From positions 24,180,001 through 24,244,000 of the forward strand of contig OZ249446.1 of NCBI GenBank assembly GCA_965235115.1: a DNA stretch of 64,000 bases. The letters run 5' to 3'. Position numbers and translations under genes: made by a program. The notes under the pieces are model-generated. The model saw only the letters and a program-made list of their open reading frames with translations. It was not told the DNA's origin and searched no databases. Source of the DNA: Laetmonice hystrix (lineage: Eukaryota). Positions within the stretch are counted from its first letter, which is position 1; each line of letters begins with the position of its first letter. Positions 1 to 34,100 of this stretch are shown one piece after another.

Positions 1-3000
1 ACGGTGTGAAACTGAGGGGTTGGTTCACACTGCTTCAGTGTCTCGACAGTTGTGTCGGCTACCCTGGCTGCAGCGCCATCGTCTACAACGAGGACGAAAG
101 GTCGTGTTCACACTTCATGAAGTTTACGACAACTCACAACCCCATACAACGTGCCTACTGCTGCCATTACGCTGTGGTAAGGTCCTTACACAAGAATCAT
201 GAGGTTTACGACCACTCCTTCCATACAACCCGCCTACTGCTGCCATTACGCTGTGGTAAGGTTAGACCTTACACAATAATCATGAGGTTTACGACCACTC
301 CCCTCCCCCACACAACCCGCCTACTGCTGCCATTACGCTGTCGTAAGGTTAGACCTTACACAATAATCATGAGGTTTACGACCACTCCCCTCCCCCATAC
401 AACCCACCTACTGCTGCCATTACGCTGTCGTAAGGTTAGACCTTACACAATAATCATGAGGTTTACGACCACTCCCCTCCCCCATACAACCCGCCTACTG
501 CTCCCATTACGCTGTGGTAAGGTTAGACCTTACATCATGTGATTTATAGCTACTCACAAACCAATGTACAATATATGTTGTGAAAAAGAAGACTACAATA
601 TATGCTTGTAAAACAACAAAATTAAGGTTTTTTTGATCAGAAATATATGCCATTTCAGTATTTTAGGAGGGTAAACGCAGATTCAAACATCCCTTATCAC
701 TGTATAATCTTTCACGATCCATGTCTCTGTTTTACTGACGTTTATAACCAAATACAATTTTCTATTTTTACAGTTGGAATGTCTCCGCCCTGTGAAGCAC
801 GTACCCTTCAGACCTCAGCTCTTTACACACAAACCTTTCAGTACAACGTCACCCCCTGAATACAGCCCAGAGCCGACGACTCCGGCCCCCTCGACACGAC
901 ATCATTACACCAACCCTCACGCCAAGAAAACTACTACTCCCCGCTACACCACGCGACCCGCTCCCACCAACGCGCCGCCCTATCCCAAGCCGAAGACGAT
1001 TGGTGTTCACGGTAGGTGGCGCGTCATTGGCAGCTAGGTCAATATGGCGCTGACGTACTACGGTGGCCGAGAATTACAAACCTCCTACGCTGCACATGTT
1101 CGGCGTAAAANNNNNNNNNNNNNNNNNNNNNNNNNNNNNNNNNNNNNNNNNNNNNNNNNNNNNNNNNNNNNNNNNNNNNNNNNNNNNNNNNNNNNNNNNN
1201 NNNNNNNNNNNNNNNNNNNNNNNNNNNNNNNNNNNNNNNNNNNNNNNNNNNNNNNNNNNNNNNNNNNNNNNNNNNNNNGATTCCACATATTAAAGAAAGA
1301 ACTAACTCGTTTTAGGAATGGTGCACACCAGGCTTTAGTAAATACAATATCATCTGTGTTACTTTATTATAGACTACAGTAAATTCTATCTATAGGACAC
1401 AACATAAGGGCTCTTGTATTTGGAAAAACGCTTTTTGGGCTAAACATCAAGTCCATTTAAATAAATAAATATACGAATATATGATTTGAATCGTGCTTAT
1501 GGTACCGGCACATTGTTTCAGGCTGCCCTGGCCCGTTCCTAAAGCAGGAGTTCACTGGTCGACAAGGTGGCATGCCGGTCTGGGACTTGCCTGAAAACAC
1601 CACAGAGAGTTGTCTCAAGTATTGTCTAAACATAGGTGATACCTGCAAGGCGGCTGACTTTGACCACACCACCAACCTGTGTTACTACTTCACCACCGAG
1701 GACCCTATGATGTTACCGACCGGACAGAAGCAGTGTTGTACTCATTATATTAGACTCAACTGTGAGTATCAGACTATATCAGACTCAACTGTGAGTATCA
1801 GACCTGTGCTTTTTTTGGCGTGAGGTGGGGCGGGGGGGGGGGGGGGTGGGACTGTCCTCTTATAATGGCCGTCCAGCTTCGGAAATCCCTCAGTGTACTG
1901 GTACTCTGGGCAGTAGCGTGCGAAGTTCAAGGGGACAAGGAGGGCACTGGCTTGCTAGACCCCATCCCTACCGAAAAATTGAAGAATCTCGATAGAAATA
2001 ATCGGTTTTAAGACACCGGTGTTTTGTGCAAAACGCTCCAGACAGCCTGCCCCTAGAACAAACCGCCTCAATTAACACATTCTGATTTTATTGGTAAAAT
2101 GTTCACCTTATCACCAACATTCTCAGTTGGGAGAGCGTTAGACTGAAGATCTAAAAGTCCCCTGTTCAAAACCTGGTCTGGGCAGATCTTTTCTATTATT
2201 TTGTTTTCAGTATGGTTTGGTAGTTTCTCTCCCCATCTCTCCAAAACGCCTTGACAATTATAGATTACTATTTTATATAATACAATAATATTATATATAT
2301 AATATACTAGTATTTAAACACCTTATATCAAATAGGCCTACCTAATGTTGTCGTATGACAAATGTCGCCTATTTTAAGGCCCTTTCTTCCCATCGTTTAT
2401 GTTTACTTGTGTCTTTCTCTCCCTCCAGGTGACGAGTTGGAGAAGCGGAGTTGTTACGAACACCAACCGTTTATTTTCTTCAGTAACCCGAACGATCATA
2501 ACGTCATCGTGTCGGCCATGCCGCCGCTCAACCCACCTGATCTCTCATTGGTCGACTGTGATGGAGTCTGCTTCCAACATCTCGACTACTGCAAGTTCTA
2601 TTTTCATCCTTTCTGATAAAGTTTTTTTAAGTAGAGTAGAAATACGGCCAACTGTGGGTCAAAACGACAGCAGGCGTCTTGATCACTTTCTGCCAAAGCT
2701 CTGATAACATGGGTGAGACCAAAACGGTTTCGTGGCTAAAACGTGTTTAAAAACTACAAAGTTACGTTTTTAAAAGCTGCATCCACAATGTTATAACTAC
2801 GGTGGCTGGGAAAGGACATCACATGATGATATTTTTCCTGAGGGTTTGATTAACTCAATGTTTTCCCTCAGTGCCAGAGCTCCAGCTGTGAGGTTTTGAT
2901 TTCTCTGATGTTTCTCTCAGTGTCGGAGCTCCAGCTGTGAGGGTTTGATTAACTCAATGTTTTCCCTCAGTGCCAGAGCTCCAGCTGTGAGGGTTTGATT

Positions 3001-6000
3001 TCTCTGATGTTTCCCTCAGTGCCGGAGCTCCAGCTGTGAGGGTTTGATTTCTCTGATGTTTCTCTCAGTGTCGGAGCTCCAGCTGTGAGGATTTGATTTA
3101 TCTCATGCTTTCCCCCAGTGTCGGAGCACCAGCTGTGAGGGTTTGATCTATCTCATGTTTTCCCCCAGTGTCGGAGCTCCAGCTGTGAGGGTTTGATTTC
3201 TCGGAGCTCCAGCTGTGAGGATTTGATTTCTCGGATCTCAAGCTGTGAGGATTTGATTTCTCGGAGCTCCAGCTGTGAGGGTTTGATCTATCTCATGTTT
3301 TCCCCGAGTGTCGGATCTCAAGCTGTGAGGGTTTGATTTATTTCTTTCCCCCAGTGCCGGACGTCCAGTTGTTTACCGTAGAGCGAGGATGTGACCGTAC
3401 ACTGAATGCCGACCGTCACTGGAAGCACTGCGATGTCTCTACCGATCCACTAGACTTTGACAAGGACTGTCGGTGTGGCTTCGATAGATGCAATGGGATC
3501 AACACTGAGGAGTTTGACCGTAAAATCTTGACTCATTTTTATGTTTAATCAAACCTATATTTTTACCATTTTTATACACCCATTTTGTACATGTATTAGG
3601 TTATGTGAAGGTAGTAAGTACAGCCACTCTGCCATTATCCATTGCCGTTCGTAGATCTCTTATGACGGGGTTTTGAGGGATGGGGAGTTGCGCACCAAAC
3701 TGGTGCTATCAGAAGCCTACATATTAGTTTTGTCCACAGACCACTGCCACAGACCTTCATAAGAAGCAGAACTGTCCCAGGCCCTGTCCCTACCACTAAC
3801 CCTTACCCCAGGTTTCGTGAGACGGTACGATGGGCACACTCTCAACTAACTTTCTAACCGAACCTCGTACCCAGATCTCAGCTGTCACTACGCCTTCGAC
3901 AAGAACGTCCTTGACGACTCTGGCTTCCAGCGACACGGCAAACCGACAAACATCACTTACGACCCCGTCAACAGCGCTCGGTCCTACTCGGCCGTTTTCG
4001 ACGGCGTGTCCTCTTTCATCTTCTTCCCGTCCTGGAGACTCGTTCACGTGGAGAAGATTAGCCCTGGAGGACGCCCATTTTTGTCATTCACCCTCGCTAT
4101 GTGGATCAAGAGACCAAGCATCATGTACGGCTACCCTGGAAGTATTGACACGATGACAGTCCTGTCAACAGGGACTAGAGACAACTCGGCCGTTCAGATT
4201 CTCAGCGACATTGAGTTTGCCAACCCTTGGACGCCCGAACACAAGATCCGGGCTTCTGTCTATATCGACAACACACGACACGAGGTGGTAGCAACGGTGA
4301 GTTAATCAGGGGATGACGTCATTAGTAACACTCGGAACCATTCGGCCTTTTCCGCCATGCAGTTTCCGGTCTTCTGAATAATAATAACGCCCTGTAGGCC
4401 TACAATTAATTTTCAACTATGGGCTCAGGACTGCTAGTCATAAACTTAAAGAACTACTAATAGCCTACTACTTACAAATACGGTACAAAGTATGGGGAAC
4501 AGTAAGTTAGTTGTATTATCCTAACGCCAAGATGGCGCCCATAATCGACAATCAGTGAGACCAAATTTTCTAAATTCTTAAGCCACCATCTCAGATAAAA
4601 AAGCATGTATATTAATTGAGCTAACGTAGGCGACAAGTGTTCATGGCTAAGGTCTAGAGGTCAGCTAATTGTACCTTTGGTGGGTTGAAGAATAAATATT
4701 CATCGCATTCCTTTAATATTACATCCAGGCGCCCCTTGACCAGTTTTTCTTCCTGGCATTCCGATTGGACGGTTTCCAGGCCGTACCCCGCCTGACGCTC
4801 GACATTGACTCGTTAGAAGATTTGACACCAGAGGACTCGCTCGAACTTACAAACGGCACCGTAACGGACGGTACGACTCCAATTATCGCTCACCAAAAAT
4901 CTTCGCACTTGTAGTCGCTTAAAGGCGTCCCTCCTAACCGTCGACGTCTATAAATAGCACATCGACCGTTAGGATGACCAGCCTAGCGCACAATGCTGAA
5001 GGACGAGACTGTCGCTTTAAACTTAAGATTCATTGGCTGGGTTTCCGGCCCACGCTATTGTTATGCTTCAGTTTCATATGCCTGAAAATAGGCCTGGTGC
5101 TGCCATCTAGCTGTAACGTTGTCCACACGTTGCCATAGCAACCATCAATTTTTCTTTTCAAAAATTGTTAGAAAAAGTATTTACCATTCACTGCAAAATC
5201 TCACTTACATTCAGGAATTCAATTTCTCAGCTATATCTTTCTCGTGGTCATGAACGTCAATAAAAAAAACACCCACAAAAAAACAAAACAAAATAGAAAC
5301 AAAGACATACACACATTGACCATGAACCTGAAATAATTAATAAATCCTAACTTGAAAATTTACTTTGTAAAATAAATTTTATGTTTTATCATTCAGAAAA
5401 GTTATTTTTTCCATAAAATTCCCTGTAACGAATTTATGTAAAGAAAGCGCCCCTTCGATTGTCTGTGTTCTGGGTTTGTTTCTCTTCCAGAACTAAGCGT
5501 GAATACCCGTGGTCTTTACCTGGGCAAGCAGGCAGCTCCCGTACCTTACCTCTACCCAGACCACTTCTTCAAAGGCCAGCTAGACGACGTAAGGATCGCA
5601 AGACTTTAGTGTATTGTTCCTCTAGATAAAACATTAGTTTTAAACAGTGTACACTGTATAAAATATCTAAACAAACAATGACACATGCATAGGTCCCTTA
5701 TAAATGTTTCTTATGCCTATGTTCCTCTAGATAAATCATTAGTTTTAAGCAGTGTACACTGTATAAAATATCTAAACAAACAATGACACATGCATTGGTC
5801 CCCTTATGTTTCTTACGCCTATTCAGCTTCAGTTCACAAAGGGGGTTATCATAATTATGCCATAAGGGACTAAAGGATGAATACTTTTAGGACACCAGTT
5901 AAAAAAGTATTATTTATATTCTGTTTCAGTTCTTCTGTTACGACAAATCATTGTCTTACCACGCCCTTTTGGCTCTTCGAGATCTCAGCCTGCCGTTGCC

Positions 6001-6004
6001 GTGA
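1..6004 (+). CDS. Gene A (5'-truncated by window edge): secreted mosaic protein PAN - Pro/Thr linker - PAN - three-finger (LU/Ly6-like) - LamG/concanavalin-like domain; 572 codons in window
   Basis: Exons <1-176, 774-1011, 1522-1761, 2429-2590 (GC donor), 3355-3519, 3875-4296, 4729-4870, 5491-5588, 5930-6004 (TGA) splice in one open frame. PAN Cys pattern (CLDSCVGYPGCSAIVYNEDERSC; CLKYCLNIGDTCKAADFDHTTNLC); LU-type end ERGC...CRCGFDRCN; LamG motifs CHYAFDKNVLDDSG, AVFDG, FTLAMWIK, FKGQLDD|FFCYDKSLS. An N gap (1111-1278) lies in intron 2. Confidence 0.85.
116..534 (+). repeat. Tandem repeat of about 83-87 nt units (exon end plus 4 intronic copies), each carrying a GTAAG donor-like site
   Basis: Unit catgaggtttacgaccactcc...cattacgctgt(g/c)gtaaggttagaccttacacaataat starts at 198, 281, 368 and 455; derived from exon end 116-197. 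Confidence 0.95.
1111..1278. other. Assembly gap (N run)
   Basis: Run of N. Confidence 1.
1746..1803 (+). repeat. 29-nt tandem duplication spanning the exon 3' end and GTGAGT donor
   Basis: tatat(t/c)agactcaactgtgagtatcagac at 1746-1774 and 1775-1803. Confidence 0.95.
2112..2184 (+). pseudogene. Degenerate tRNA-Phe(GAA) copy in an intron of gene A
   Basis: ctcagttgggagagcgttagactgaagatctaaa matches the eukaryotic tRNA-Phe D arm and anticodon arm; the acceptor stem and T-loop (GTTCAAAA) are mutated; 73 nt. Confidence 0.75.
2839..3354 (+). repeat. Minisatellite (about 49-50 nt units plus three 30-nt units) ending at the acceptor of exon 3355
   Basis: About a dozen copies of gagggtttgattt...tttccctcagtgYcRgagctccagctgt. 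Confidence 0.95.
5616..5822 (+). repeat. 105-nt tandem duplication in the last intron of gene A
   Basis: gttcctctagataaa...gacacatgcat at 5616 and 5721. Confidence 0.9.
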
Positions 6005-7397
6005 CTGGGACTGAACAGAGCTTTCATATAAAATATTGCTTACCATTTGAGTTTAGGTATTCGCCAAACAACCCTTCTTCCTTGTGTAATGGAGTGTATC
6101 TAGTGTATGTTTCCCTTCCCTTTAGAATAGTAGTTGGTATCATTTGGGATACTATAGGAATCTGATCCTTTAAGAATATTCCATTATTCGAATGGGAAGT
6201 ATATGTGTAGAAGCAGTGAATAAAAAATGCCTTTGAGTTTGATGGTTTATCAGTCTACTGGTGTTGATTCTGAAATAGGCTTTGTACAATGACACATTGC
6301 TATGGAATCGTATATTGTATCATCAAGATATAATGCATCTACTGTAGAGCTTCTCTTTAAGAAAATAACAAAGGTTATGTTAATAAATATGTAGAGGCGT
6401 AGAAAGCTGTCTCCAGTCAGTCAGGACAAGCGAAAAAATTATAATGGTGATCAAAACAGAACAGACTCACAGAATAGGAATACTATGCAAATCACATATT
6501 ATTGAAATGCGCGGGGTCCTCTCCCAATTTTGAATTTGGAGGGCCAGAAACGCTAATTCCCGACATCTGGAGATATAAATTGTGAAGTTTCTCGAAGTAT
6601 TTAGGCAAAGCCTACCAATAATTTCCACTTCTTCAAAGGGGGGGGGGGGTGCCTTTGATCTGCGACTTGTCCTAAACTAAAAAGTTGCGAACAAGGCACA
6701 AGGCAAGGCCTCTATGGAGGTGCATGTCTCTGATAATGCAGGAGTCTATGGAGTATAACAAAGAAAGTCTTAATAGGAACAGAGAGAATAGGCAGCCTTG
6801 TCCCTGTTTGATCACAATGGGGGGGGGGGGGGGTAATTTTTGTTATGGGGGGGGGGGCATGACCCCCATTTTCCTAAGCCACCGCATAAATCACATGTAT
6901 GTGGTACATATGGCTCTACGTATAAACTCCGTTCGTTTTAGACTATATCAATGTTAAAGTTCTGTGATTATGGGTATAGATCAGATTATAGTGTTATGTT
7001 GCCTCCGTCTCTACAATAATTTAATGATAGGAGTTTCGTTTAATAATCATATTTCACATGTGCGTCTCATGCAAACTGTTCGGCATTCGTTGTTAAATAA
7101 ATAAACCTATACCCGAGAAAAAATGTTTTATAGAATATCTCGATACTGTTCGTCATTCAAAGTACATTTTATGGAGTACACTAACGTACTCCAAATACCA
7201 CAACAGAATGCTTTCAATTTGGTCCATCCAGTGCCATGTTCTAAAGCATCAGATTACACAAGCAACTATTTCCCCATGACGTCTTTCCGGCACTCAAGTT
7301 AGGCACTAACTATTTCTATTTAAATGACGTCCAACTATGGGAGCGGTTGGCGATGTCGAGTTTTAAAATGTCGAGTTTGCAACAGTTGTAAAATTGA

Positions 7398-9686
7398 TTA
7401 CAGGTTCTTGTCGATTTGCAGCTGGAGTATGTCCTTCTCCTCGAGGACCGTCTGGAAGAGCTGAACCTGAAAAAAAAATTAAAAAAAATAATAGTGAGAT
7501 AATATTAACGAAATCATATTAATATTTAGACTTGCAATGTAACCTGACTGCTGTTCCTGTTAGGAATGACAGACAATTCTAATTGGAGAAATGAGAGGAA
7601 GTAAGTCCCTTGTCCACTTTTTACTTGTCTGATATCATTTCGAAAGAATTCGACGACTTGAACGAAAATCTATTTAATTTGGCGAACAGATATATTGATT
7701 GTTTCTAAAGGGACACTCACATTACTGAGATATCCAATGAAACCTTTCCCAAATTTGAACGGACGGCTGTTGACGTTTGGCACTGCAATAAATAAAAAAA
7801 ACATTGCATTACTGATCTAATAGATGTATTGGGAGACAATGGGGAGGTGAGAAAATTGTTCTGATGAAAAAAGCAACAATATATATAATGTCGATGTCTA
7901 AGCGAAAATAAAAGTAAGAATGCCTTGCTTCTTGACCCCAACCTACCAGCCTCTATAGGTGAAATGGCCGTCAGCACGCTCTTCGGTTCGATAATGGCTG
8001 GGGGCTCGTCTACTTCCGGTTCTACGTAAAGACGCACCTCCCGTGGTACGGCTGCACAGACGAATGTTACCATCACCCATTCGTCGTTCGGTGCCTTTGG
8101 GATATTACGTTATAATACGTTTTTATTTGTATATAAACTTCTCTCATATTCTACCATGATTTAACAAAACGTTAGGGCAACTCTACAAAAATATAATAAA
8201 AATCTCAAAATATGAAGAGAAGATGCGAATCTCTTGCAGGCTTGTTATTTCTGCTTTTCTTAGATCAGCTTGTGCAATACAACACCGGGGACATAATAAA
8301 CACAATTTATAAAGGAGTAAGAGGGACGTTTTTCTACCTCTTATTTCCTCCAAAGGAATATAAAAATGACGTACCGTTGCATTCACAACATAGGCCACGT
8401 TACTCAGTAGAATTTCAGCCCGAATGATCTGACTGCCATCATCACCGTCTATAGGAAGTGACGTCACGTCCACCGTTCTTAAACCGCCATGACCGTTGCT
8501 GACGAGGCTCATTGCCATCATGCTATTGGTCAGCTTCTTCCTGAACACCCAGAACGTCAAACTGAAGCCCTTGATGACGTTTCCGTCGTCTCGGACGTTG
8601 CCAATGGATACGAGACCCAGTGACGTCACCTGGACGAAGGATTTGCCGTCGAAGCATGCGCCTGTCTGTGTCGGTCGGAACGTTACACCGTGTTTGGCGG
8701 TACCGTGCCGCTCGTAGCCGCTGTAGTCTCGGAAATCCGTGTCCAGAGGGTACAGCGCCAAACGATCTAACAGAGTTTATAAAAGGAATATTCAAAAACT
8801 TCTAAAAGTAGACCCAAGTCAGACGGTATTAGAACTATCTTTGTATTTGTCTTTGGGCTCTACCGTAATAGTGTTTTGGTCAATGGGCTTCCTTTAATTT
8901 TAATGATTTCATACTTGATTTCACATAAAAGATGGTGTTGTGGTGGCTCAGTAAGATAAGGCTGCGACTCATGACCACAGGTCCTGTAACCTCTGGTTTT
9001 GGAACCCTTCGGGCCGGATGTGCGAAGGGTTTTCAATAGCATGCTGTAAGTATGTTGGTTATCCACGGGTGCTTCGGCTTACTGCCGTTGCAGGAGCGTA
9101 CCTAAAGCCCAAATCCAAACGCCAAAAATCCAAACTTACCGAAAAGCGCCAGGACGCTGAGAGAGTTGCAGGAGTCGGACAAACATGTACAGTAGATAAA
9201 GGATCCCTCCTCGCCAAAGTAATCCGACACTTCACATTGCATCCAGCGTCTTGACTTCCGGCGGTCCTCTTCACATCCCCGCTCGATCAATCCGGTGTGG
9301 TCTGTGAATAGAACATTGAATAATGATGTTAGAAAGATAAAGTTGGTTCTTGTGTACAAATGGTGAATTGAAAACGATATGACCCTTACTTTTATTGACC
9401 GTGATCTTGGTGAAACAGTGTCCATAGCAAGCCACGGTGTCGTTAGAGATGTGGCTTGCTGTCACATGGAGACTTTTCTCAATAAGTACCGGGTCGTGAA
9501 CTGCGCATGTCTGCTGTGGTCGCGGGTTTGTGCCTTAAACATAGGAAACCGTGACTTATTGAGTGGAAAAAGTAGGCCTATTCCCTTTATTAGATACAAC
9601 ATATTTATTATAATAGACAGCTCTATTAAAGACTATAATATCATTAGTAGACTTAAATGTTTATAGGTCGGTTTTTAATAGACTCA

Positions 9687-9777
<91 letters not shown>

Positions 9778-12700
9778 GAGCCGATGAAAGAAAAATCCAG
9801 TTGCAGAGAAGGAGGAGGAGGAGGAGGAGGAGGAGGAGGAGGAGGAGGAGGAGGCGCGTACTTACAATTGTTGAAGGAGAAATACGTGTGCCCCTTGGTC
9901 GGGTTGAACATCTCATCGCTCTCAGGTTCGTCAAATATGAAGCAGTGTTTTTTACCGATCTCTACCCCAGAACAGTTGTTCGGCAACTTCTCCATGCAGA
10001 TCTTGAGGCAGTTTAGCTGTTGGCTTTTCCCCGATTTCATAGGAATCAGTATACCTCCATTGCGTTGTAAGTTCTCATAGGCGCGGAATGGACATCCTTT
10101 AAATATACAGGTTCCCCTGATAATTAATAGTAGGATCTTCCTATTGTAAGATCAGCAGCAAATTTGGTGGAAGGATTTATTTAACAATTCACATTATTGC
10201 AAACCCTGATACTATAACCCGCCCTACGGGGCTAAAAAAACTAAATTATTGGCAAATAATTTCCTGTGTGTGTGTATATTCTAGGGCAATATATGTAATA
10301 CTATAACACAACAAAATGCATAAAAAAATACCAATAACATGATACGAAAAAACATAGAAGCAAACTTTTGAAAAGTTTTGAATCCAAGTCGAGGAGATAC
10401 TTGTAATCAAACGATTTCATGGTCGGTTACCATCAGTTCTGATCTGTTTTCTCAGGTACAGATAGTAGTCCTTGGACGACGCTCCAGGGGACATCGTCAC
10501 TTGAGGACCTTGAGTAGCCATATAAGGTTTAGCTGTTGGTCCATAGTTGTGAGGATGCGGGGCAGGTGGCGCTGCGGTCACATGAGGATAGGGTCCGTAG
10601 TTGTGAGGATACGGGGCAGGTGGCGCTGCGGTCACATGAGGATAGGCTACAGATGACGCAGCTCTGTCCGTGTAGGACTTGGAGTCGTGCGGATCAGTGT
10701 TCTCACAGGAGAGCTGGGTACACAATGCATTAGTTAATTAAACGAGATATTTTAAATGAAGTCCTGCAGTTGTTTTATGATCATAAGCTATGACAATGAG
10801 CATGAAAGGTTAAATGCGGGTATATTTAACCAAATTGCCACCAGGTGGCGGTGCAGTGAAAGATTTAGCGCGTTGGGTTTCTGCATTCTCCAGAAGAGGG
10901 GACGAGCAGGCTGAAAATAGAGTTATCCCAGGAGCCGATAGAACCAGAGCAAGGGTCTGGGTAAGGATTCGGGGCAGGGCGAATTTTAAGGAAGGGGTTA
11001 ATCTAGGGGTAGATACTGGGGTGTGAATAGTGATCTATTTTAGGTCTTATTTTAGGTCTTACCGTCCAATTTCGTTACCATGGAAACCAGGTGGAGGTGG
11101 CACAGGTTACAAAGAGATGTGAGCGATTTCTTTCGGGGTAGGGTGGCAGGCGTGTGTGCAGGATTTTTCGCAGAGGGGGGGGGGGGGGTGGGGGTTGACG
11201 ATGTGGTGGTCAAAATCCCACATCAGAAACGCTGAAAGTGTGCATCGATATCAGTCTATACAAAAATTGGGGCTCTGAGTAGGTGGTTTCAAAGAGCTAA
11301 AATAGGACACATAGCTGTTAATGTGGAGCTGGCCATGCAACAAGCGGGATTTCAGAACTGGTAAGCTGATAAGATTAGCGGGCGACTTTCCCCGCTTTTT
11401 CCCCCAGGTACAAACCAAAATACTTTGAAGACATCGTAGGATCTCACCCTGACATGGGAGCAGCACGAGTTAGGCACAGGCGGGTGAAGGAACTGCGTGT
11501 TCCGTACGTGGAAGAAACAACTACTAGACTTTTTGTCGTAGTCCACGGCGGTACACAACCTGTCGTGAATCGACTTGGGGTCGTTTTCATCGATACATTT
11601 CTGGACACACGCCTCGAACGTGACGCCAGTGGCAACGTGGACGCCGTCGATGACCTGATGGTTCTCGTAGATACGGCTGACGTAGCAACCGTTGCCAACG
11701 TAGGTTTCGTTTTCGCTGTGTGGAGAGGGGTCGGGAATTCCTGTTTGAAGTATAAAGACCAACAATAATTAAATGAGGCTGGTTTATGGTGCTCAGGGGT
11801 CACTTAATTATCTCGATCTCCTCTGTCGGACGCACATTATGTCCGATCCCACCTTTGGCACCCCCCCCCCCCCTCCTGTCTCCAAGAAAATACATTAGTC
11901 ATAGTTAACTTCTTGAATATAACATCAAATGATTGAATGCCTTCTAAGGTCATGAATCATCCCTTTTATATACATTCTGGCGTTTACGACATAGTAACAC
12001 AATCTTATACATGAATAACTAACTGTCAGACAACTATAAAGGGTGCAATAAAACTTTATGCTATTAGAAAAAAACATTTAGAGTAATACAATTAACGAAG
12101 GCGTCTGTATTTTTCTCAAAGCCAATATCGGTAGCGATGCGTGACGTCACCTATTTTGAGCGAGCTATAGTAAATTCAGTAACATAACCGGAAAAAAAAC
12201 GATATCAGTTATTTACCTTCATGGTACCGATAGGGTTTAGTGTTTAATTAAAATACGACAGTCAGAGGTGTCGGTCTGCATGAATCACAAGGCGTAAAGA
12301 AAATGCAAACATTAGGAAAAAAAGAAACAACAAAAAAAGAAGTCCCCATTCCTTAGAGAGTTCAGACAAGGAATAATATATCAACAGGTAATGTTCTGTT
12401 CTTTTGTTTTGGGAGATATATAATCACAATGACAGTTCCGAAGTTGATTATTCATTGTCAGACTTTATCTACCAGCATGTAAGCTGCGATGAGACACCGA
12501 AAACCTAGTCAGGACATAATGATGGGTAAATATTGTTCAATTTAACAAAGGATTCAATGGGGGAAAGACACCTTCTGCTATTAACATTCTTCCAAATTGT
12601 ACATATATCCATCAATATTGATAATTTTAAACGAGAGAGAAAAAGGTAGGTCACCGTCATCAAAATGAAAGGTGGAAAAGCTTTAATGCAAGAAACGGCT

Positions 12701-15700
12701 TCCATTGGGTTCAATGGTAAATTGCCTTTGCCCGTCATTTTCCCGAAAATTAGCATGGTGACCTATAATTTTTAATGCGTTATTTTCAAGCTTATACTAT
12801 GACTATGCTACAAAAAAATTAGAACTTTGTTATAGTTTTTAATGTTTGGCATATGCCGCCAGTTTAACTTCAAAATACTAAAAAGTGCTAGTAATGATTC
12901 AACTAAGTTCAACTCCAACTAAGTCTGATTATTTGTCCCCATTTGATCATGGAATCTAAAAAGATTTTCTTCGTTCGTTAACAGCCTTGGAGATCTTGGT
13001 GGAGAAGTGTTATGAGAACTTGGAGAGCAGGCCAGTTTTCTGGGAGGGGATTCCCAAAAACTCACTAACTTCCCCCAAAGGTTTTCTGGCTTTATTTTTT
13101 CAAACTGCCTAGTCATCGACTCCCCCATAGAAAAGTGAACTGCTGAAAGAACCCCTAACTTACCCGGTTTTTCGGTAGGAGCGTTGTACATGAGGGTGGG
13201 GTTGAGTTTGTTCCGTTCGTCACCGACACAGAACCCCACCCGATAATGAACAACCCCCGGCAGGTGACTAAGCCGATCACGTGGGTAGCACGTGCCAGTC
13301 TCGTGGATCACACACTGAGTCTCGGTGGGGAAATAATCGACACCCCAACACTTCCCCAATTTCTCACAGTACCGGACGCATTCAGTGGCCGACATCTTCT
13401 TCTGGGGGGCCAGGTAGCCCCCGGAATACATGGTGCCGTGCATCATTTCCGGGGTATAAACTGGCAAAATTGAGCAAAAGAAAGTTAAAACATACAGGAA
13501 AATCCGGTTATTCCCCCATGATAACTTTCTCACCAAATTTTTGGGAAGGGGTTCGGGTTAAAGGGAATAGAAAAGTTCAAACTATCAATATAAGGGTGTT
13601 CAGCATGAACAAGCTTGTTCTTACCTACAATTCTGTGATCATCTGATCTTTAATAAAGGAATAATCAACCGAAATGTAGAGACATTCTCCCGCTGGCTTC
13701 GTCCGTTTGTTTACCCTATTTGGCCCTTATCTCAATCTATTAATAGATATAGCTCCCGCTGTCTCGCGTGGGAAATAGCGAATGACCCGGGCGGTATTTT
13801 TAAAAAGTCGCCGTTGACAGTGTTCCACATACTATATATATATATGGAATACCGGCGACGACATGCGAGATGCGAGACAGTGTGTTTGGGTTAGGGTAAA
13901 GGTTAGTCCTAGGGTTAGTGTTAGTTTTAACTTTAGCCCCAAAATTATTGTTAAATAGGCACTAATTGAGCAGTGGATCGTGATGTCGGTGTCAATAACA
14001 AACATTCTATGTGCTAAATTGACACTGTTCGGTACCATGTCGCTTCTCGCATCTCGCATGTCGTCGCCGGTATTCCATAGTTCCACTTATCGGTGTGACC
14101 TTAGACACTTTACTGGTGTTACTGGTGTTCAAAGGTACGTTAGTGAGGAACTTTTTTATTCCCTTTAAGGTCGGGGATAGGGATAAGGATAGGGATAGGG
14201 ATAGGATAGGGTTATGCTTTGGGAGGTGTAGGGACATTAGTAGTGACCGGGGTTAGGGATAAGGTCTTGGCTATGGATCTTTACTTTCGAACCCACTAAA
14301 AACCCCACTTATACCTCGACGTCATACCTGGTGACAATATTCTATTGACCACTATCAGGAGTAAGAAATTTCAATGGGTCAGCCAGCATTAAGTGCTGAA
14401 CCCACCAAGGCGATTCCCCTTGCGACGGCCATGAGGTTTTTGATTTAATGGTGGAATTTCACTCTGAAATTTTTCCTGGCTGGCCTTCTCCGTTTCAGGA
14501 AATGGGTTCCATCCTTTAATCTCAAAATTACAGTAAAATAAAAGGGTGATGTCAAAACTGCATGGGCGTCGCAAGGGGAATCGCCTTGGTGGGTTCAACA
14601 CATTACAGAGGAATGCCCTGTGTTATTGTCCTGGTCCACTGACCATGCTGGCCATGATGTCTGTTCCATTGTAATTACCTGCTCCTGACAGTGGAATATT
14701 GCACTTAGCATATTTCGGCCAGGAATTACGCCGAGATGAGTGGGATTTCCCCGTATATGGAATTACTTTGAGTATAAATTTGAGGAAAGATGACATATGA
14801 ATTATACAGCGTATGTTACAATATAGAGTGTTTAACTAATGCTCCATGTACATCGAGAGCCCCCGATATGTATGCATTCACCTTGTTACACCCCTTGGCT
14901 ATACATTCAACCAAGGTTCATCCAGTACATTAAGCGCCCTCTATCGCTGAAAACAAGCATCTTTTATAGCAACAGCTGGTCTCGGCTAACTTTGAATTTG
15001 ATGAACGTCAATTAATTACAGCGACATAAAACGTATACTACATATAGAGAGGGCAATTTTTCGAAAGCAGTGCTATAATACATGACTTCCGTGACATTGA
15101 CTTGAACAAAAACTTCTGTCTCTCCGAGAGCCCTTATGATTTATATCCACTATAAAATTAACAATTTGACAAACGACGGTAGAATCAATTAACAATAAAA
15201 TAAATCTCATGATTGATTTCATGCGGGGTATTTAAGTCTGCTGAAATACCTGGAGGAAGACAATGAAATTAGCCATGCTCGTTACTGTATATAGAAATGT
15301 CACAGGCCAGGCAAGTCCATCTGGACAGCATACTCGTGTCTAGCATATTAATTAATATATCTAATATCTTATTGAGTCTAATACAATTGTAACCTCAAGA
15401 ATGGCGGCTTTAACCAATTCTATCACTGTCCATATTTCAGACTTGCCTTGGGGCATTTTAATGCGACTTACATGCTTGGCCGTTTGTCAGACTATTTCAT
15501 ATCATACATAAAAATGTAGATTGGTATTTTTATAGGTTTGTTCATTAATTTCATTCTTCGTTCGTAACTCATAAAGAGGCAATTGCTATAAAAGAAAGTT
15601 GAAGGCTGCCCTAGAATGCAACTTTTTACACTCGTTTTATCAACTTTTATTTCAGTGCAGGAATGAAATGCTACACTACTTTTAATATTTTTTAACAATA

Positions 15701-16283
15701 TAAACGTGATTGATGATAAAGAATTACGATACATTAATAGCCGCAGCCGCAAATCCAGGAAGAAGGTGAGGGTTCCAATGGTTCATTCGAACCCCCTTCT
15801 CTACCTCCCCAATAAAGAAATGAGAAGAAAAAGAAAGAAAGAAAGAAATGAAAAAGCAAACGGAACCAAATTAACAAGCTTCGGGTTTGGCGATAGCTAA
15901 GGAGCCTAAAAACAAAATTAAATTTCAGAATTTTCCGGGGGGAGGGGGCATAATTGGAACCCCCTCTTGAAATATCATGGAGCCGCCCGGCCTGGTCGTG
16001 GTAAGAAAACATTTGAGGGGGTATCCATGCACCAGGGATTCCTGACAAGGAGGAATTCACAACTGAAGCAGCAAAAACGAAAAAAGATACTCTAAACGGA
16101 CCGCTCCCTGCCCCCCATCTGAAAATTCCCTGAATGAATAAACTATTGTTTTAGCAGGATGAAACACCTTCAAGTGTGAAAATAAATAAAGATGAAGAAA
16201 AACCTACCTATTGCGGCGGCAAAGTCTGTGGCGGTCAGCAGTAAAAAGACAGCAGTGATTTTCATCCATTCTCTCGGTTCCAT
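7398..16283 (-). CDS. Gene B: secreted mosaic protein, signal peptide - PAN - PAN - Pro/His/Tyr linker - PAN - three-finger (LU) - LamG; about 718 aa; paralog of gene A
   Basis: Exons (minus) 16283-16208 (MEPREWMKITAVFLLLTATDFAAAI, signal-peptide-like), 13460-13164, 11740-11448, 10713-10431, 10096-9866, 9533-9390, 9301-9140, 8766-8375, 8094-7947, 7782-7721, 7466-7398 (TAA). All GT-AG, total 2157 nt = 719 codons in frame. Motifs CVRYCEKLGKCWGVDY, CVQKC...CTAVDYDKKSSSC, IERGC...CTCLSDSCN, LYPLDTDFRDYSGYERHG, CFDG, FSLTFWV, FIGYLSN|VQLFQTVL. Additional small exons in the 2.7 kb first intron cannot be excluded. Confidence 0.85.
9690..9853. repeat. (CT)n and (GGA)n microsatellites in an intron of gene B
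   Basis: Directly visible; these produce the low-complexity ORFs in the track. Confidence 0.95.
10538..10645 (-). repeat. 54-nt coding tandem repeat (2x YPHVTAAPPAPxPHNYGP) in the linker exon of gene B
   Basis: ggtcc(a/g)tagttgtgaggat...cacatgaggatag at 10538 and 10592. Confidence 0.9.
13843..14079. mobile_element. MITE-like element with 35-bp perfect inverted repeats and internal degenerate (GGGTTA)-like tract
   Basis: tatggaataccggcgacgacatgcgagatgcgaga (13843-13877) vs its reverse complement at 14045-14079; the outer TA may be a TSD. Confidence 0.75.
14397..14597. repeat. 31-bp perfect inverted repeat with about 140 nt spacer
   Basis: tgaacccaccaaggcgattccccttgcgacg (14397-14427) / cgtcgcaaggggaatcgccttggtgggttca (14567-14597). 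Confidence 0.9.
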
Positions 16284-18531: not shown

Positions 18532-18687
18532 NNNNNNNNNNNNNNNNNNNNNNNNNNNNNNNNNNNNNNNNNNNNNNNNNNNNNNNNNNNNNNNNNNNNN
18601 NNNNNNNNNNNNNNNNNNNNNNNNNNNNNNNNNNNNNNNNNNNNNNNNNNNNNNNNNNNNNNNNNNNNNNNNNNNNNNNNNNNNNNN
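18532..18687. other. Assembly gap (N run)
   Basis: Run of N. Confidence 1.
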
Positions 18688-27646: not shown

Positions 27647-28153
27647 AGAGAGACAAAGAGAGAGACACACATAGAGACAGACACATTGTAGGGAGAGAGA
27701 GAAAGAGAGAGGGAGAGAGGGAGAGAGAGGGGCGGTTTGCCAATCAATATTTTGTTATAGGTCTGTTTAGTGATGTGCGAGACAAAGTCAATGGTATAGG
27801 CCTACTTGTAAACCTATCAGGACATGGTAAAGTTTGTGTTGTTCCTCACACACTGACTCGATCTATTTATAGATAACATACGCGCTCACCGTAAACCTTT
27901 GACCCTTCCACTGGATTTTACTAAAACAGGGACACGCCAAACTGAGCGAGTGACTGGCTACAAACAGGATTGAGTTTGAATGAGCTCTTCAAACCTCGAT
28001 TAACTTGGTGCCTTGCCCAGGAAGAATTCTCAGAAGATTCCGAGTGACCACGTCTCTCATGAACAGTCATGCCCCAAATCTTCTCGTTTTAACTTTGGCC
28101 GCCAGGTGGGGTAGCGCATCGTTATTTCAGAAACGGATAGCACGTCATTCGTC

Positions 28154-31100
28154 ATGACTCGCAGTTTACGATTAAGTTCTGGCAGCATTGGCGAGCGATC
28201 TCCTCTGCTGGGCAGCACTTACGAACAGTACAGCAAGAGTTCAGATGAAATTACTGGAAGGCAGCGACATGTCACGCAAACGTCGGTGGTGTCGATTCGC
28301 ATGGGCAAACACATCAACCTGCTCCACGCCATTGGTATGATGGTGGGCAGTATCGCAGGCACGGGCATTTTCATCAGTCCCACTGGGGTCACGGAAAAGG
28401 TAGGCCAGCAATTATTTATTTCCAAGTCGGGGACGGATCCAGGTGTGCGCCAAGGGGTTGGTGGGATTGAGGGGGGGGGGGGGGCGCAGGTGCCAAGGGA
28501 TGGGGGGGGGGGGGCTATGCTTGGTTTTAACCTTTCGAGGAGAAAAATGTGTTATCTTGCACTTGTTGCATGCTTTGAAAGCTAACTCTGCATAAAAGTT
28601 TTTTTTTTTTGGTATAACAAGTAATTTTAGCGAGGTACCTATTTAATTAACGAATTGAGCAATTTGCCATTTTCTCTAACAATAGTTGCCGCAAAATCTT
28701 AACCATAAAGCCTTCTACACTAGCAGATGTACACATTCTCAAATCGCTAAAATTTGTACCCGCTAAATAGTCCATATTGAAAATTCGCAAAATTTTATAC
28801 CCGCTAAATAAAACTGTTAAACAGTAGACTACAAATTGGTCACATAGATTGGTAGGGTACAACTCGCACTGAGTTTAATGGTCGTGTCTGAGAGAAATTA
28901 CCTAGGCGACCCAGATACTCGTAATTTGAAACGCCCTAGTTTTAATGTTTTAATACAGGTGGCGTTCACGGTCTAGTTTTTCTCTGAGTATAATATTATG
29001 AGAAGGAAATGATATCAATAATAGTACTGATACACGATATTATAATGTTATTATGTTTACAGGTTGGTTCGGTAGGTTCTACGCTGGTCGTGTGGACACT
29101 GACAGGCCTGTTCAACCTTCTCCTAGCCCTATGTTACGCCGAACTCGGCACAGCGCTCCCCCTAGCGGGGGGAGACTACGCCTACATTGACTATGCCCTC
29201 GGCCGACTGCCTGCGTTCCTCTGTCTCTGGCTCATGGTCGTTCTGATTGGGCCGTGTGTGATTGCCTTGTCGGCACGAACAGTGGCAGCCTATCTGACAG
29301 CACTCCTCGGACTGGAATGCCAAGTGACTTTGGCGTTATTGGTGTCCTTCATCGTCATAGGTAAGGCCCCACAAAACGTTGGTTTCTTGTCCTTGCTTAT
29401 AATAAAAACCCGCGGAATGTTTTTAAGAACGTGGAGAACTACGGCTTAGGCAATAGATCTACTCCACCACACCCCAAAGAAACATTGCAACGGTCTGCTG
29501 CAACGCTACTTTGCCCACCACAACATTAAAGGGAGGGCAAAGGTAGGTCTATAAGCCTGTCCCAAAACAAAACAAAAATTAAAATAAATAAATAAACAAC
29601 CAACGATTAATTGATGCCCTGAGATTAGTAGACACGTGCGGTGACGAGAAACAACCCCCTTTTTGGTCCTAAATGAACGACGTAACGCTATCTCCGATGA
29701 CCTGTAGAATCAAGACGTTGGACAGGGCGGGACAGGTGTTGACATGCCTGTCTTTAACACCTTAATGTAAACTTAGACTTTATACCGGCGATGTGTCCCT
29801 ACTTTAGCACTGATTTATTAACGTTTTTCAAACTAAGATTAGAATTTATCACCTATATCATTATGGGACGTCAAAGAAGAGCTCGTAAAAAACAGGTGGT
29901 TTTGTTTTTCTGTTTTCTTATAATATAATACAATGTATATGATTTGTTTATGACGCTAAGTCAGTTTCTTATCAGTGTTGTCAGAGTTTGTGGTTTCCTA
30001 ATCGTTATCTCTGACTGAAGCTCGCGTCAGACTTTCTTCACTATATAAATGGAGTGTTTGTATACGAGCGGTCTTTTTGAAGTACCACCTCCAATGGAGA
30101 CATTCAAGTACCTATATACATGTATAGCGATAATAAATAACCATTTTTTCAAGATTACTATAGTGGCACTCCCTGGACATGTTTAATGTTTACAAATATT
30201 GTTGCAGACATGTCCAGAAGTGTTTTCGGCAAAACCTGGCGAAAATATGGATGTAGTTTATGGGACTACCGATTATAATGAATGATGAAATAAGAGAGGC
30301 CAATGCGATTTTGTCCCATTCAAATCTCATGACTATCCCCATCCCAAACACCATATCATCTTAAAAGAAAATCGTAATTTGTATCATATTTATTTGTTGA
30401 TTTATTTATTTCTATATTGGGGAGGGGGGGGGGGCAAAATAAATTAACTTCTTCCTAACTGAATGACCACTGAATAGCCTCCATATGAGTTTGCACTTTT
30501 TACGAAAGTTTCTAGATTCCCGATATATTTTTGTTAATAGAAACCAGCATGAAGTCGGTTTGATCCATACAATATTTACCAAACTAACCGAGCTTCCTGC
30601 TGTTTCCGCCAGGGGTCGCGGCGGTGATTAATTGCTCCAGTGTCAAGTGGTCTGTGCGGTTTATCACGATCTTCTCTCTCGGCAAGGTGCTTGCTATGAC
30701 CGTCATAATCATCACGGGGATAGTGAGGGTCGCGCAAGGTGAGCCCAGGGCCTGTTTCAAAACAACCGATGATGCTTCTTTGCAATTAGATCTACTTCAT
30801 AATACCTGCGATCGGATCCGTGCATTTATTGGAAAATTTACTAAAAACATGTAGGGGTATGTTCTTCTGTGTAATGTGAAACGTTTAATGTTCCCGCTCG
30901 GCAGGCTATACCGCCTACCTGGACCGACCGTTCGAGGGAAGCGTCACTTCTCCAGGCCCTCTTATTGTGTCATTCTTACCAGCGTTTGTCACCTTTGCAG
31001 GATGGTAAGTATATGGCGCGAGCCGGGGCTGGGTGGGTAGTGTAGGATGGAAAGCGTGCAATATGATCTTTAAGCCTCACAAATCTGGGTTCGAAGCTCC

Positions 31101-34100
31101 TCCCTGCTTTCTGTTGAACATTCGTTAATTACTTGCTGAATGCAAGGTCGGAGGTTTTCCCCGGGTATTCTGGTTCCCCTACCTCTCATGTTGACGACCT
31201 TACCTTTGTTCTTGGCGAGGCGTGAAACCAAATTCGCATTTCACACGGATTAACCGTCATAATTGTCTAGTGAATCCACATTTGCCCGGCTCATTTTAAG
31301 AAACAGCTAACATGAACGAATACCATGCTTATTCCGTACGTTAAGTCATATTAAAGTAAATACTGAATGGTAAATGTAGACATTGTGATGTCTTGTATTG
31401 GTGTATGTTTGCAGGGAATGTGTTTGTGCCCTGGCTGAGGAGATGAAAAATCCTCAGAGGTAAGGCAATGTTTCTAAAAATACATTGGCTGAAGAAGTGC
31501 CCGTCTCTTAGCTTTCTTAGGTTTTCTTACTTCGCTTCAAAATTCATGTGCATCTGTGTATCGCGATGATATCGTTGTGTTTTTGAATGCGGTTCGTTAC
31601 CACATGGCGTCTCACCACTGGGTTCGATGAATCCCTCTCTAGCTAAATACGAGAAGATTTCTCAGTTCCCTGCATGTTTTGGTGTTGTTTTCGCTGACCT
31701 CCCAGAGATCTCCCGATCGCCACAGTCGTGTCAGTGTTACTGGTTGTTGCCGTGTATCTCCTGATGAATGTCGCTTACTTCACGGCTCTCTCTCCCACCG
31801 AGTTCGTCGCCTCAGACGCTGTCGCTACGGTGAGTGCAGAATGTTTAGAAAATCCGGTGATGTTCCAATTTGGTGTGTGTGAGGTGGATAAAATAAGATA
31901 TTCTCAGTGTGGGTAAAACAAATGTCATTAGTGTATGGGTAAAACAAACGATACCAGTGTATGGGTAGAACAAATGTCATCAGTGTATGGGTAAAACAAA
32001 CAAATGATACCAGTGTATGGGTAGAACAAATGTCATCAGTCTATGGTAAAACAGAATGATCTCAGATATAGGTAAAGCAAAGTGACGTCCGTGTGTTGGT
32101 CAAGCCAAGTGATATTTTTGCGTCACGCATACATTGACCGTTGGTTTTAATCTCGCTCTCTGTCTCGCTGCCTCTCTGTCTCTCTATTTCTCTCCCCCCT
32201 CTCTCTCTCCCCCTCTCCCCCTCCCCTCTCTCTGTCTCTCTATTTCTCTCCCCCCTCTCTCTCTCCCCCTCTCTCCCTCCCCTCTCAGTAATTGCCTTGT
32301 AGTTGTCCGATGATTACGGTAATACATAAACCGTTAACCATTCAGTAATTGCCTTGTAGTTGTTCGCCGAGCGGACTATGCCTGAGGTTTCGTTCCTCAT
32401 TCCATTGTTTGTTATTGTCTCGGCCATCGGCTCGGCTCTCAACCTCTTCCTCTGCTGCCCCAGGTACGTATATCACGCCAAGAAAGTTTCAAAGGCATGT
32501 ATCAAACCTACCTGACTCTTGTATTACCACTCCTTCATATTTCAAGTTTGCGTCCGATGTCAAGGCAGGTAGTGTGGTTGGATCCATGAGGAAGGTCACG
32601 CCACACACCTCTCCGCCTTGTTGTTGAGGTCGGAGGATGCAAAATAATTTACGTCATTTTGAGGTTTTTCTGTATAAAATAAATCTACAATGGTACGTTT
32701 CTAGATCGTTTCTAGATGCAACACCTCGAAAGTAGCTCCTATTGTATCTTTTGCGCGAAAGTGTGTCGCCTAATCCTTGATTAATTGTATAGGAAAATCT
32801 AAATTCTATTGCCATACCTGCAGGATTCTGTGGATGTCTTTCAGATGGGCCTTTGCCGGCGGGCGGGACCAGGCCATGCCGCGGGTTCTGGCCTTTGTTC
32901 ACATCAAGAGTTTTATCCCCATTCCATCCATCATACTCACGGTAAGTAGAGTTGGGGGGGGGGGGGGCGGGGGTCGGGGGGGAGGCCCCCCTTTCTGATG
33001 TTAACATGTAGGTTTATATTGATCTTGAATAGCAGTGTCTTGATATTAATAAAATAATTGATATTAATGAAATATTCTTATGCTCTATGCGTATGCTTAT
33101 GATATTACTGCCGTATTTATATTACAACATGTAAATTGTTAATATATTGCGTGATTTAATTTCAGGGATAATAAAGGTCTACCTTAAAGAAAGGAATATT
33201 CTTTTCCAGGGCGGTCATCACAAATTCAACTTTATGGTTGTTTGATGATGGTGTTCTTTTTTTTTGTTTTGTTGTGCCAGATTTGCACAGCTTATAAGTT
33301 AAATCTTGGTTAACTTTCAGCTTGCAGTAACAGCGTTTTTCTGCGCTGCAATATTTTTCGATATTCAAGACATGCTAAACATTACAAGCATCATCACACA
33401 GATCAAAATGATATTGGCGTTACTGGCGCTACTAGTTCTCAAATACCGAGAACCTGACAAATCCAGCACAATAACGGTAGGATATTCATAGATTTCTCTC
33501 TCATTCCAGTATAACTGCATTCATGGTTAATATCTGTGTAGGTTAACATCCCTTTGCCATCAATATGTATACGTTGACAAAGACAGTACTATACTGCAGA
33601 TCGGGAAACACTTTAAGAGGTTATAGCTGTTAAGACAGAAACTAACCATAGGTTTGAACCTACAACCCCCAAGTCGGTGGATTTATCCATGCAATGTTAT
33701 AGCACAAACCTCATCGGATTATTTCTTCTTGTTTGCCCCTTTTTTGTCCCCCACGATCCTATCCATCGTCCAGCTGGTACGCGAATTCAACTTTATCGGT
33801 GGATTTTTCTTTCCCTTTTCCCGAAGATTCCGTGTTTTCTCGTCGTGTTTTCCCTGGCGGTGCTTACTGTCGTTACCGTTATACCTCTGTGGGAGTCACC
33901 GTTTGTAGCCGCCACAGCTTTCGTTGTTTTCATGTGTGGGTTCCCACTTTATTATATCAAGGAACATATGTCAAAATATAACTGCACTAACAACTTTATG
34001 GGTAAGTTTGACCGTCTTTACATTCTTTATCAGAAGATGTTCTATTTTGGTATTTTTCTTCCGTAAATGTTATTTTATATCATACAAAAATAATCAAACA

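Follow-up and report, generated by a model that had tools for sequence, protein, structure and literature searches.

At the start of a 64,000-nucleotide stretch of the Laetmonice hystrix genome (assembly GCA_965235115.1, OZ249446.1:24,180,001-24,244,000; hereafter the window), two genes within positions 1-16283 raise the question of whether the modules discernible in their exons, namely PAN domains, an eight-cysteine module of three-finger (LU) type and a laminin G-like (LamG) domain, are joined in one secreted protein and, if so, whether such a protein has been described and what it might do. The window has the features of eukaryotic DNA, with a G+C content of 37-49%, microsatellites and short open reading frames (ORFs) bounded by AG and GT. 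The PAN, LU and LamG genes and their architecture are very probably real, and the two genes, together with a third one nearby, form a set of old paralogues within a small gene family of annelids, in which each gene encodes one secreted, unanchored mosaic protein. What is new is the arrangement, as yet uncharacterised, of domains that are themselves known; the kind of system is not new. The best overall explanation, in which these annelid paralogues act as secreted multivalent binding or adaptor proteins, is held with moderate confidence.

Gene models were obtained by translating three frames around each ORF with PAN-like, cysteine-rich or LamG-like sequence and then assembling exon chains. Gene A, on the forward strand, runs off the window at base 1 and ends at 5609 or 6004, and gene B, on the reverse strand, extends from 16283 to 7670, the facing 3′ ends of this tail-to-tail pair lying 1.5-2 kb apart. 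The two share one order of modules, i.e. signal peptide, two PAN domains, a proline-rich linker, a third PAN domain, the eight-cysteine module and LamG, and their exons (eight in gene A within the window, ten in gene B) can be joined into one open frame without internal stop, giving a gene B protein of ~690 residues and 676 residues for the modelled part of gene A. These models uphold the tail-to-tail PAN-LU-LamG gene pair of the original prediction at the positions it gave, and agree with its LU boundaries (2429-3519 and 9533-9140) and its start at 16283. Its statement that both genes splice cleanly stands as regards the AG/GT exon chains, which are open, and has to be qualified for one GC-AG donor in gene A, for ambiguous 3′ ends, and for the 5′ exons of gene A, which are located outside the window. 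In the upstream locus, these comprise PAN1 at L002:9107-9361, the start of PAN2 at L002:9887, and a signal-peptide-like first-exon candidate at L002:5988-6063, whose 76 bases have the phase and length of the corresponding exon of gene B (16283-16208).

Intron phases are equal at all homologous introns of the two genes at a protein identity of 22-31%, which argues for old paralogues under constraint and against chance ORFs; all eight LU cysteines and the cysteines of the PAN domains are kept despite this divergence. A third, divergent paralogue, gene C, is located ~15-20 kb upstream on the forward strand (L003, G000:C12:24160001-24170000, at ~580-5500), with the module order PAN, linker, PAN, LU, LamG, the same as in A and B, and with the motif CYCDTDRCNGLS, which is identical in a protein of Owenia fusiformis. 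The cluster is oriented C>, A>, <B. Three copies of the LU exons are present in the 35-contig assembly, all at most 30 kb apart, and no further copies of the family were found outside the cluster across the 627-Mb genome.

Collinear relatives are found in two named annelid proteins, one from Capitella teleta (ELU14836.1 / R7VEV6, 'Apple domain-containing protein') and the other from Owenia fusiformis (CAH1790132.1 / A0A8J1TWM4, 'uncharacterized protein'). Gene A aligns with the Capitella protein (P0096) at 28% identity over 438 residues spanning PAN3-LU-LamG (E 9e-30), with P0015 at E 2e-23 and with the Owenia protein (P0101) at E 3e-21, and gene B aligns collinearly with the last of these over PAN3, the eight-cysteine module and LamG (E 9e-16). 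Both named proteins resemble A and B in having a signal peptide, PAN repeats, a Thr/Pro linker, a PAN domain, a cysteine-rich module with the CxCxxxxCN motif and Laminin_G_3, but share only 23-28% identity with them and have other numbers of PAN repeats and other linker lengths; the Capitella model additionally lacks two LU cysteines, through either a real loss or an annotation gap, and neither entry carries an LU or function annotation. Four uninterrupted ORFs of 581-774 residues (P0015/P0141, P0143, P0161 and P0074) were also recovered in assemblies of sequencing-run and metatranscriptome type, where the contigs that carry them measure 2.1-3.1 kb; a search with full-length P0015 returned only itself, probably owing to threonine-rich words, and region-restricted searches added P0143 and P0161. 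The uninterrupted ORFs on these mRNA-sized contigs, together with the collinear annelid relatives, indicate that PAN, LU and LamG form one protein in the family and do not belong to separate genes.

Family exon fragments in the same exon order occur as a head-to-head duplicated pair in an 821-kb contig of a relative (ENA ERZ26052287; L005, at 1013-10261 and 5450-6830), with the two gene copies forming an inverted duplication that is split by a long tandem array of ~129-base units. In the gene tree, gene C falls together with the Owenia protein and P0143/P0161 (support 98/98), whereas the position of A and B is only weakly joined. The branches are all long, and lengths above 2 substitutions per site occur. 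The spread of the family over distant annelids, with old subfamilies, does not agree with the lineage-specific character that had been proposed for it.

An alternative to be considered is that the genes are non-functional as modelled, being either decaying copies or a set of modules expressed in separate transcripts. This would accommodate the non-GT donor required in gene A, the tandem repeats that have grown over three of its splice junctions and the ambiguous 3′ ends, as well as the finding that no RNA run contains the stretch; the three runs that do contain it also carry introns, and are hence to be regarded as DNA. Such a reading is nevertheless highly improbable in view of the exons that remain open with matching phases in both genes, the LU and PAN cysteines kept at the low identity of the paralogues, and the collinear architecture of annotated annelid proteins and of uninterrupted, transcript-sized ORFs.

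The PAN assignment is borne out by Pfam, in that PAN_1 (PF00024) exceeds its gathering cut-off of 21.4 bits in four exons, i.e. PAN3 and the upstream PAN1 (22.0 bits) of gene A and PAN1 and PAN2 of gene B (Table 1). The partial PAN2 of gene A scores below the cut-off and PAN3 of gene B has no match; the spacing of the PAN cysteines can be read from the translated exons of both genes.

The LU module of genes A, B and C has eight cysteines and keeps the final C-N, with a C-x-C doublet (C-x-C-x4-C-N) in contrast to the usual CC-x4-C-N, and all eight cysteine columns, along with the ERGC and CxCxxxxCN motifs, are common to the LU modules of the window and the family. The LU halves and LamG of the window were scanned exon by exon, and folds were modelled on relatives with the window exons in the alignment. 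With the halves scanned separately, the second-half exons match the C-terminal half of the QVR profile (PF17064) at 16.1 and 18.1 bits, below the gathering cut-off of 27.3 bits. QVR is matched at E<=1 by 8 of 13 family LU pieces, the best at a likewise sub-threshold 23.4 bits, and contiguous family members cover the whole profile at 22.9-23.4 bits. Searched against PDB sequences, a family LU profile matched only the ectodomains of BMPR2 (E 0.05), TGFBR2 and AMHR2, at E 0.05-3.7.

An AlphaFold2 model of P0143:256-352, the alignment for which included both LU halves from A, B, C and L005, reached a predicted local distance difference test (pLDDT) value of 78.5 and a predicted template modelling (pTM) score of 0.72. 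The best 50 Foldseek matches of this model in the PDB are all three-finger proteins, and the first 38 VIA-align matches among 48,161 chains are all of this fold (LU, toxin or TGF-beta-receptor; Z 8.3-4.1, including GPIHBP1 at 8.3, TEX101 at 8.2, CD177 at 8.0 and Lynx1 at 7.0), with scores of at most 3.1 thereafter. Its AlphaFold DB cluster matches include quiver and sleepless entries, and A0A1S3HPE5 and A0A1S3IL96 (E 1e-6), which we take to be from Lingula. On the basis of the structure searches, the sub-threshold QVR matches and the PDB profile matches, the predicted three-finger fold is solid for the family, and the reading of the eight-cysteine module as LU is confirmed to that extent by the model of a relative.

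LU domains are known from small glycosylphosphatidylinositol (GPI)-anchored or secreted proteins, toxins and the ectodomains of TGF-beta receptors. With the Ly6/uPAR and quiver/sleepless (QVR) group, including GPIHBP1, TEX101, CD177 and Lynx1, the family shares the fold (Z 7-8.3 over 67-82 aligned residues), the eight cysteines, the C-terminal C-N and a sub-threshold match across the whole QVR profile. Unlike in Ly6/uPAR proteins, however, the LU domain lies inside the protein, ahead of LamG, and does not constitute a small stand-alone GPI-anchored protein, neither a GPI signal nor a transmembrane helix is present, CxC replaces CC, the first loop is long, and the score is below the gathering threshold.

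Laminin_G_3 (PF13385; gathering cut-off 27.6 bits) gives no match or 12 bits on single exons of the window, and LamG exon a alone has no Pfam match. A profile of exon a from both genes, searched against 1.84 billion representatives, retrieved 140 proteins (best E 6e-35), and those that were scanned with Pfam all carry Laminin_G_3; in the collinear homologues this domain is above the cut-off (72.6, 32.1 and 34.5 bits). The C-terminus of the Capitella homologue, modelled with the window exons in the alignment (pTM 0.78), has 320 matches in the PDB at E<=0.001, of which the listed best 50 all contain a jelly roll, with the TSP-1 N-terminal domain, NEL, pentraxins and the clostridial BoNT Hc-N domain represented. 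The LamG reading is thus borne out by the profile search, by Pfam on the homologues and by the fold search on a relative. Features shared with Laminin_G_3-type jelly rolls (TSP-1 N-terminal, NEL, pentraxins and bacterial LamG_3 repeats) include an N-terminal motif of the type L-x-L-D-G-x-x-x-D-x-S-G and, towards the C-terminus, a G-x-[IL]-D-[DE] strand, in addition to the profile matches and the fold match of the relative's model (E 1e-6 to 1e-5). In contrast to known Laminin_G_3 proteins, the family is very divergent, its LamG is partnered with PAN and LU, and the window exons fail Pfam when taken alone. Most of the 140 proteins retrieved with the exon-a profile are bacterial multi-LamG_3 proteins without the architecture, and were not counted as relatives.

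The expectation that no described protein combines all three domains holds as far as tested. The named relatives are uncharacterised, no mention of the Capitella and Owenia accessions was found in the literature searched by accession, and the architecture is not in a 2026 survey of LU domains, which according to its Table 1 covers >380 invertebrate genomes, including five from annelids. Beyond the known settings of LU, that survey reports a few additional architectures; annelids have only LU-only proteins and receptor kinases in it, and its new partner domains include neither PAN nor laminin G. The family was missed there because of its sub-threshold hidden Markov model (HMM) scores, and it shows that divergent LU domains inside large secreted mosaics can escape HMM surveys. 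In a paper on lophotrochozoan shell proteomes, PAN domains and laminin G domains are each mentioned, but not together. What is added is a PAN-LU-LamG_3 architecture conserved across distant annelids, which is no new mechanism by itself, and a small, defined family for annelid biology, made up of a cluster of three genes here and of one named locus each in Capitella and Owenia.

A signal peptide can be seen in the first exon of gene B as well as in the homologues, and no hydrophobic transmembrane or GPI-like C-terminal tail was found in either 3′ variant of A or B or in the homologues, in line with what had been claimed for the C-terminus. A donor consensus is present immediately after the DD/SN codon in the last LamG exon of both genes and, by the look of its translation, in that of gene C. 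This, together with the candidate terminal exon of gene A (5930-6004), makes the stop codons of A and B ambiguous. An HMM of the homologues' C-termini gave 12.6 bits for the read-through and 11.2 bits for the spliced form of gene A, and ~0 for both forms of gene B, such that this small HMM does not decide between them. An equivalent of the candidate exon is present in L005, where the conserved C-terminal strand is encoded in a separate further exon.

As to function, the most likely reading, tentatively put at just under an even chance, is an adaptor role in matrix, mucus or at the cell surface, which by analogy would rank before that of a tethered signalling regulator or decoy and that of a defence or venom component. 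Attachment to glycans or to matrix, mucus or cell-surface proteins would be through the PAN domains and the LamG jelly roll, the proline-rich spacer (Thr/Pro-rich in gene A; in gene B Pro/Tyr/His-rich and containing a repeat of 18 residues) would form an extended, probably O-glycosylated stalk that projects a PAN3-LU-LamG head, and the three LU loops would bind a protein partner. Invertebrate matrix PAN mosaics, such as the PAN-ZP cuticle proteins of nematodes and insects, are likewise secreted, and combine several PAN domains with a mucin-like spacer and, at the C-terminus, a binding domain. The present family differs from these in having LU and LamG_3 in place of ZP, and the likeness is one of functional analogy only.

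The structural and profile matches of the LU module also bear on a second possibility, in which the protein would be a soluble or matrix-tethered signalling regulator, with LU as the active part (a TGF-beta/BMP decoy or a quiver/Lynx-type channel modulator) and with PAN and LamG serving only to localise it. TGF-beta receptor ectodomains (Activin_recp) likewise place LU inside a multidomain protein, provide the sole PDB matches of the family LU profile and are among the structure matches at Z 6-7, and the best Pfam and AlphaFold DB matches are to quiver and sleepless. However, the family has no transmembrane segment or kinase and its LU is not N-terminal, the E-values of the receptor matches are 0.05 or worse, the likenesses are at the level of fold or superfamily, and LU domains bind very different partners. 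Signalling regulation is considered unlikely, though not negligibly so, and its more specific form, an internal LU acting as a matrix-tethered trap for TGF-beta-family ligands or as a neuronal receptor or channel modulator fixed by PAN and LamG, is somewhat less likely still; if true, LU would be deployed here in a way that has not been described for any phylum.

The presence of three-finger toxins among the structural matches likewise bears on a third reading, close to an idea raised in the original prediction, of a secreted defence, venom or immune-recognition component with a lectin-like carrier and a toxin-like three-finger warhead. The small size, clustering, tandem duplication and strong divergence of the family, and the resemblance of the LamG jelly roll to pentraxins, would be compatible with such a role. 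The nearest LU matches, however, are endogenous Ly6 proteins and not toxins, the family is conserved in the non-venomous deposit feeders Capitella and Owenia, and the proteins are large mosaics with no apparent sites for proteolytic release, making a defence or venom function improbable. Venom in particular is favoured by none of the present results.

Several points weigh against the explanation of these paralogues as secreted multivalent adaptors. The gene A model requires a GC-AG donor, both genes have 3′ ends that are ambiguous between read-through and spliced forms, and in the exon-by-exon scan the window's LU and LamG exons do not reach the Pfam thresholds, with the corresponding fold models being those of relatives. 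The adaptor role is based only on the behaviour of these domain classes elsewhere, and the fast evolution of the family seen in the branch lengths also fits immune or defence roles.

Table 1. Exons of genes A and B and the assembly gap in the first part of the window, with the evidence for each.
Feature	Position	Strand	Evidence or remark
Gene A PAN2 exon, 3′ part	1..176	+	Exon start L002:9887, 114 bases before window; donor GTAAGG at 177; PAN_1 19.5 bits (partial)
Gene A Pro/Thr-rich linker exon	774..1011	+	Phase 0 to phase 1; aligns with homologues' Thr/Pro linkers
Assembly gap (N)	1111..1278		Inside gene A intron 1012-1521, phase 1 both sides
Gene A PAN3 exon	1522..1761	+	PAN_1 25.6 bits (cut-off 21.4)
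Gene A LU first half, Cys 1-3	2429..2590	+	GC-AG donor GCAAGT at 2591; Cys columns aligned across family
Gene A LU second half, ERGC ... CxCxxxxCN	3355..3519	+	QVR E 0.024, profile positions 48-86
Gene A LamG exon a	3875..4296	+	A+B profile retrieves Laminin_G_3 proteins and family homologues
Gene A LamG exon b	4729..4870	+	Exon chain
Gene A LamG exon c	5491..5609	+	Read-through to TAG 5607-5609, or end 5588 with donor GTAAGG at 5589; Laminin_G_3 E 0.24
Gene A candidate terminal exon (putative)	5930..6004	+	Phase 0, 24 codons + TGA; would restore the family's conserved C-terminal strand
Gene B candidate first exon (putative)	16208..16283	-	ATG, 25-codon signal-peptide-like sequence, donor GTAGGT, phase 1
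Gene B PAN1 exon	13224..13460	-	PAN_1 26.5 bits
Gene B PAN2 exon	11448..11740	-	PAN_1 27.9 bits
Gene B Pro/Tyr/His-rich linker exon	10431..10713	-	Holds 54-base coding tandem repeat
Gene B PAN3 exon	9866..10096	-	Divergent, no Pfam match; homologous to PAN3 of gene A
Gene B LU first half	9390..9533	-	Adjoining phase-1 intron 9389-9302, 88 bases
Gene B LU second half	9140..9301	-	QVR E 0.0056
Gene B LamG exon a	8375..8766	-	Exon chain, A+B profile
Gene B LamG exon b	7947..8094	-	Exon chain
Gene B LamG exon c	7670..7782	-	Stop TAG 7672-7670; or end 7721 (donor GTGAGT), 51-base intron, exon 7669-7529

Two positions in gene A bear on the continuity of its reading frame. The first is the assembly gap between the linker and PAN3 exons, at which, given phase 1 on both sides and a junction that matches those of gene B and the homologues, it seems that no residues would be missing. 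The junction reads ...HG/CPGPF in gene A, ...DG/CPFRA in gene B and ...GK/CPDPF or ...TG/CPYNL in homologues (the slash marking the exon boundary), with the same form in four homologues, and the counterpart of this intron in gene B is 334 bases long with no exon inside. A small exon hidden in the gap is unlikely, though formally conceivable. The second is the end of the first LU exon, from which an in-frame exit is available only via the GC-AG donor, the nearby GT breaking the frame. The resulting spacing from the third cysteine to ERGC is 18 residues, which fits the 17 residues of gene B and the 15 of P0143.

Three tandem arrays lie at splice junctions of gene A, and each copy within them offers a decoy for splicing. 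The first, at 115-534 (87 bases x 4.9), copies the end of the PAN2 exon with its donor; the second, at 1746-1803 (29 bases x 2), copies the PAN3 donor; and the third, at 2839-3354, consists of 50- and 30-base units copying the acceptor of the second LU exon and its first ~16 bases. A 105-base tandem duplication at 5615-5822 directly follows the read-through stop of gene A, and would lie within the last intron if the candidate terminal exon is used.

No extra PAN exons were found in the first introns among ORFs of at least 45 codons. In gene B, the repeat in the linker exon (54 bases x 2, at 10538-10646) produces the 18-residue Pro/Tyr/His-rich duplication. The microsatellites (CT)44 and (GAG)16, at 9691-9854, start 12 bases past the donor of the PAN3 exon, which ends at 9866; as they would read in frame as poly-proline, an ORF list overstates the length of this exon. 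Elsewhere in the window, a second assembly gap is located at 18532-18687, and positions 28100-34100 hold exons for a membrane protein resembling amino-acid transporters (with the motifs GTGIFISP and AELGTALP), which is unrelated to the PAN-LU-LamG genes.

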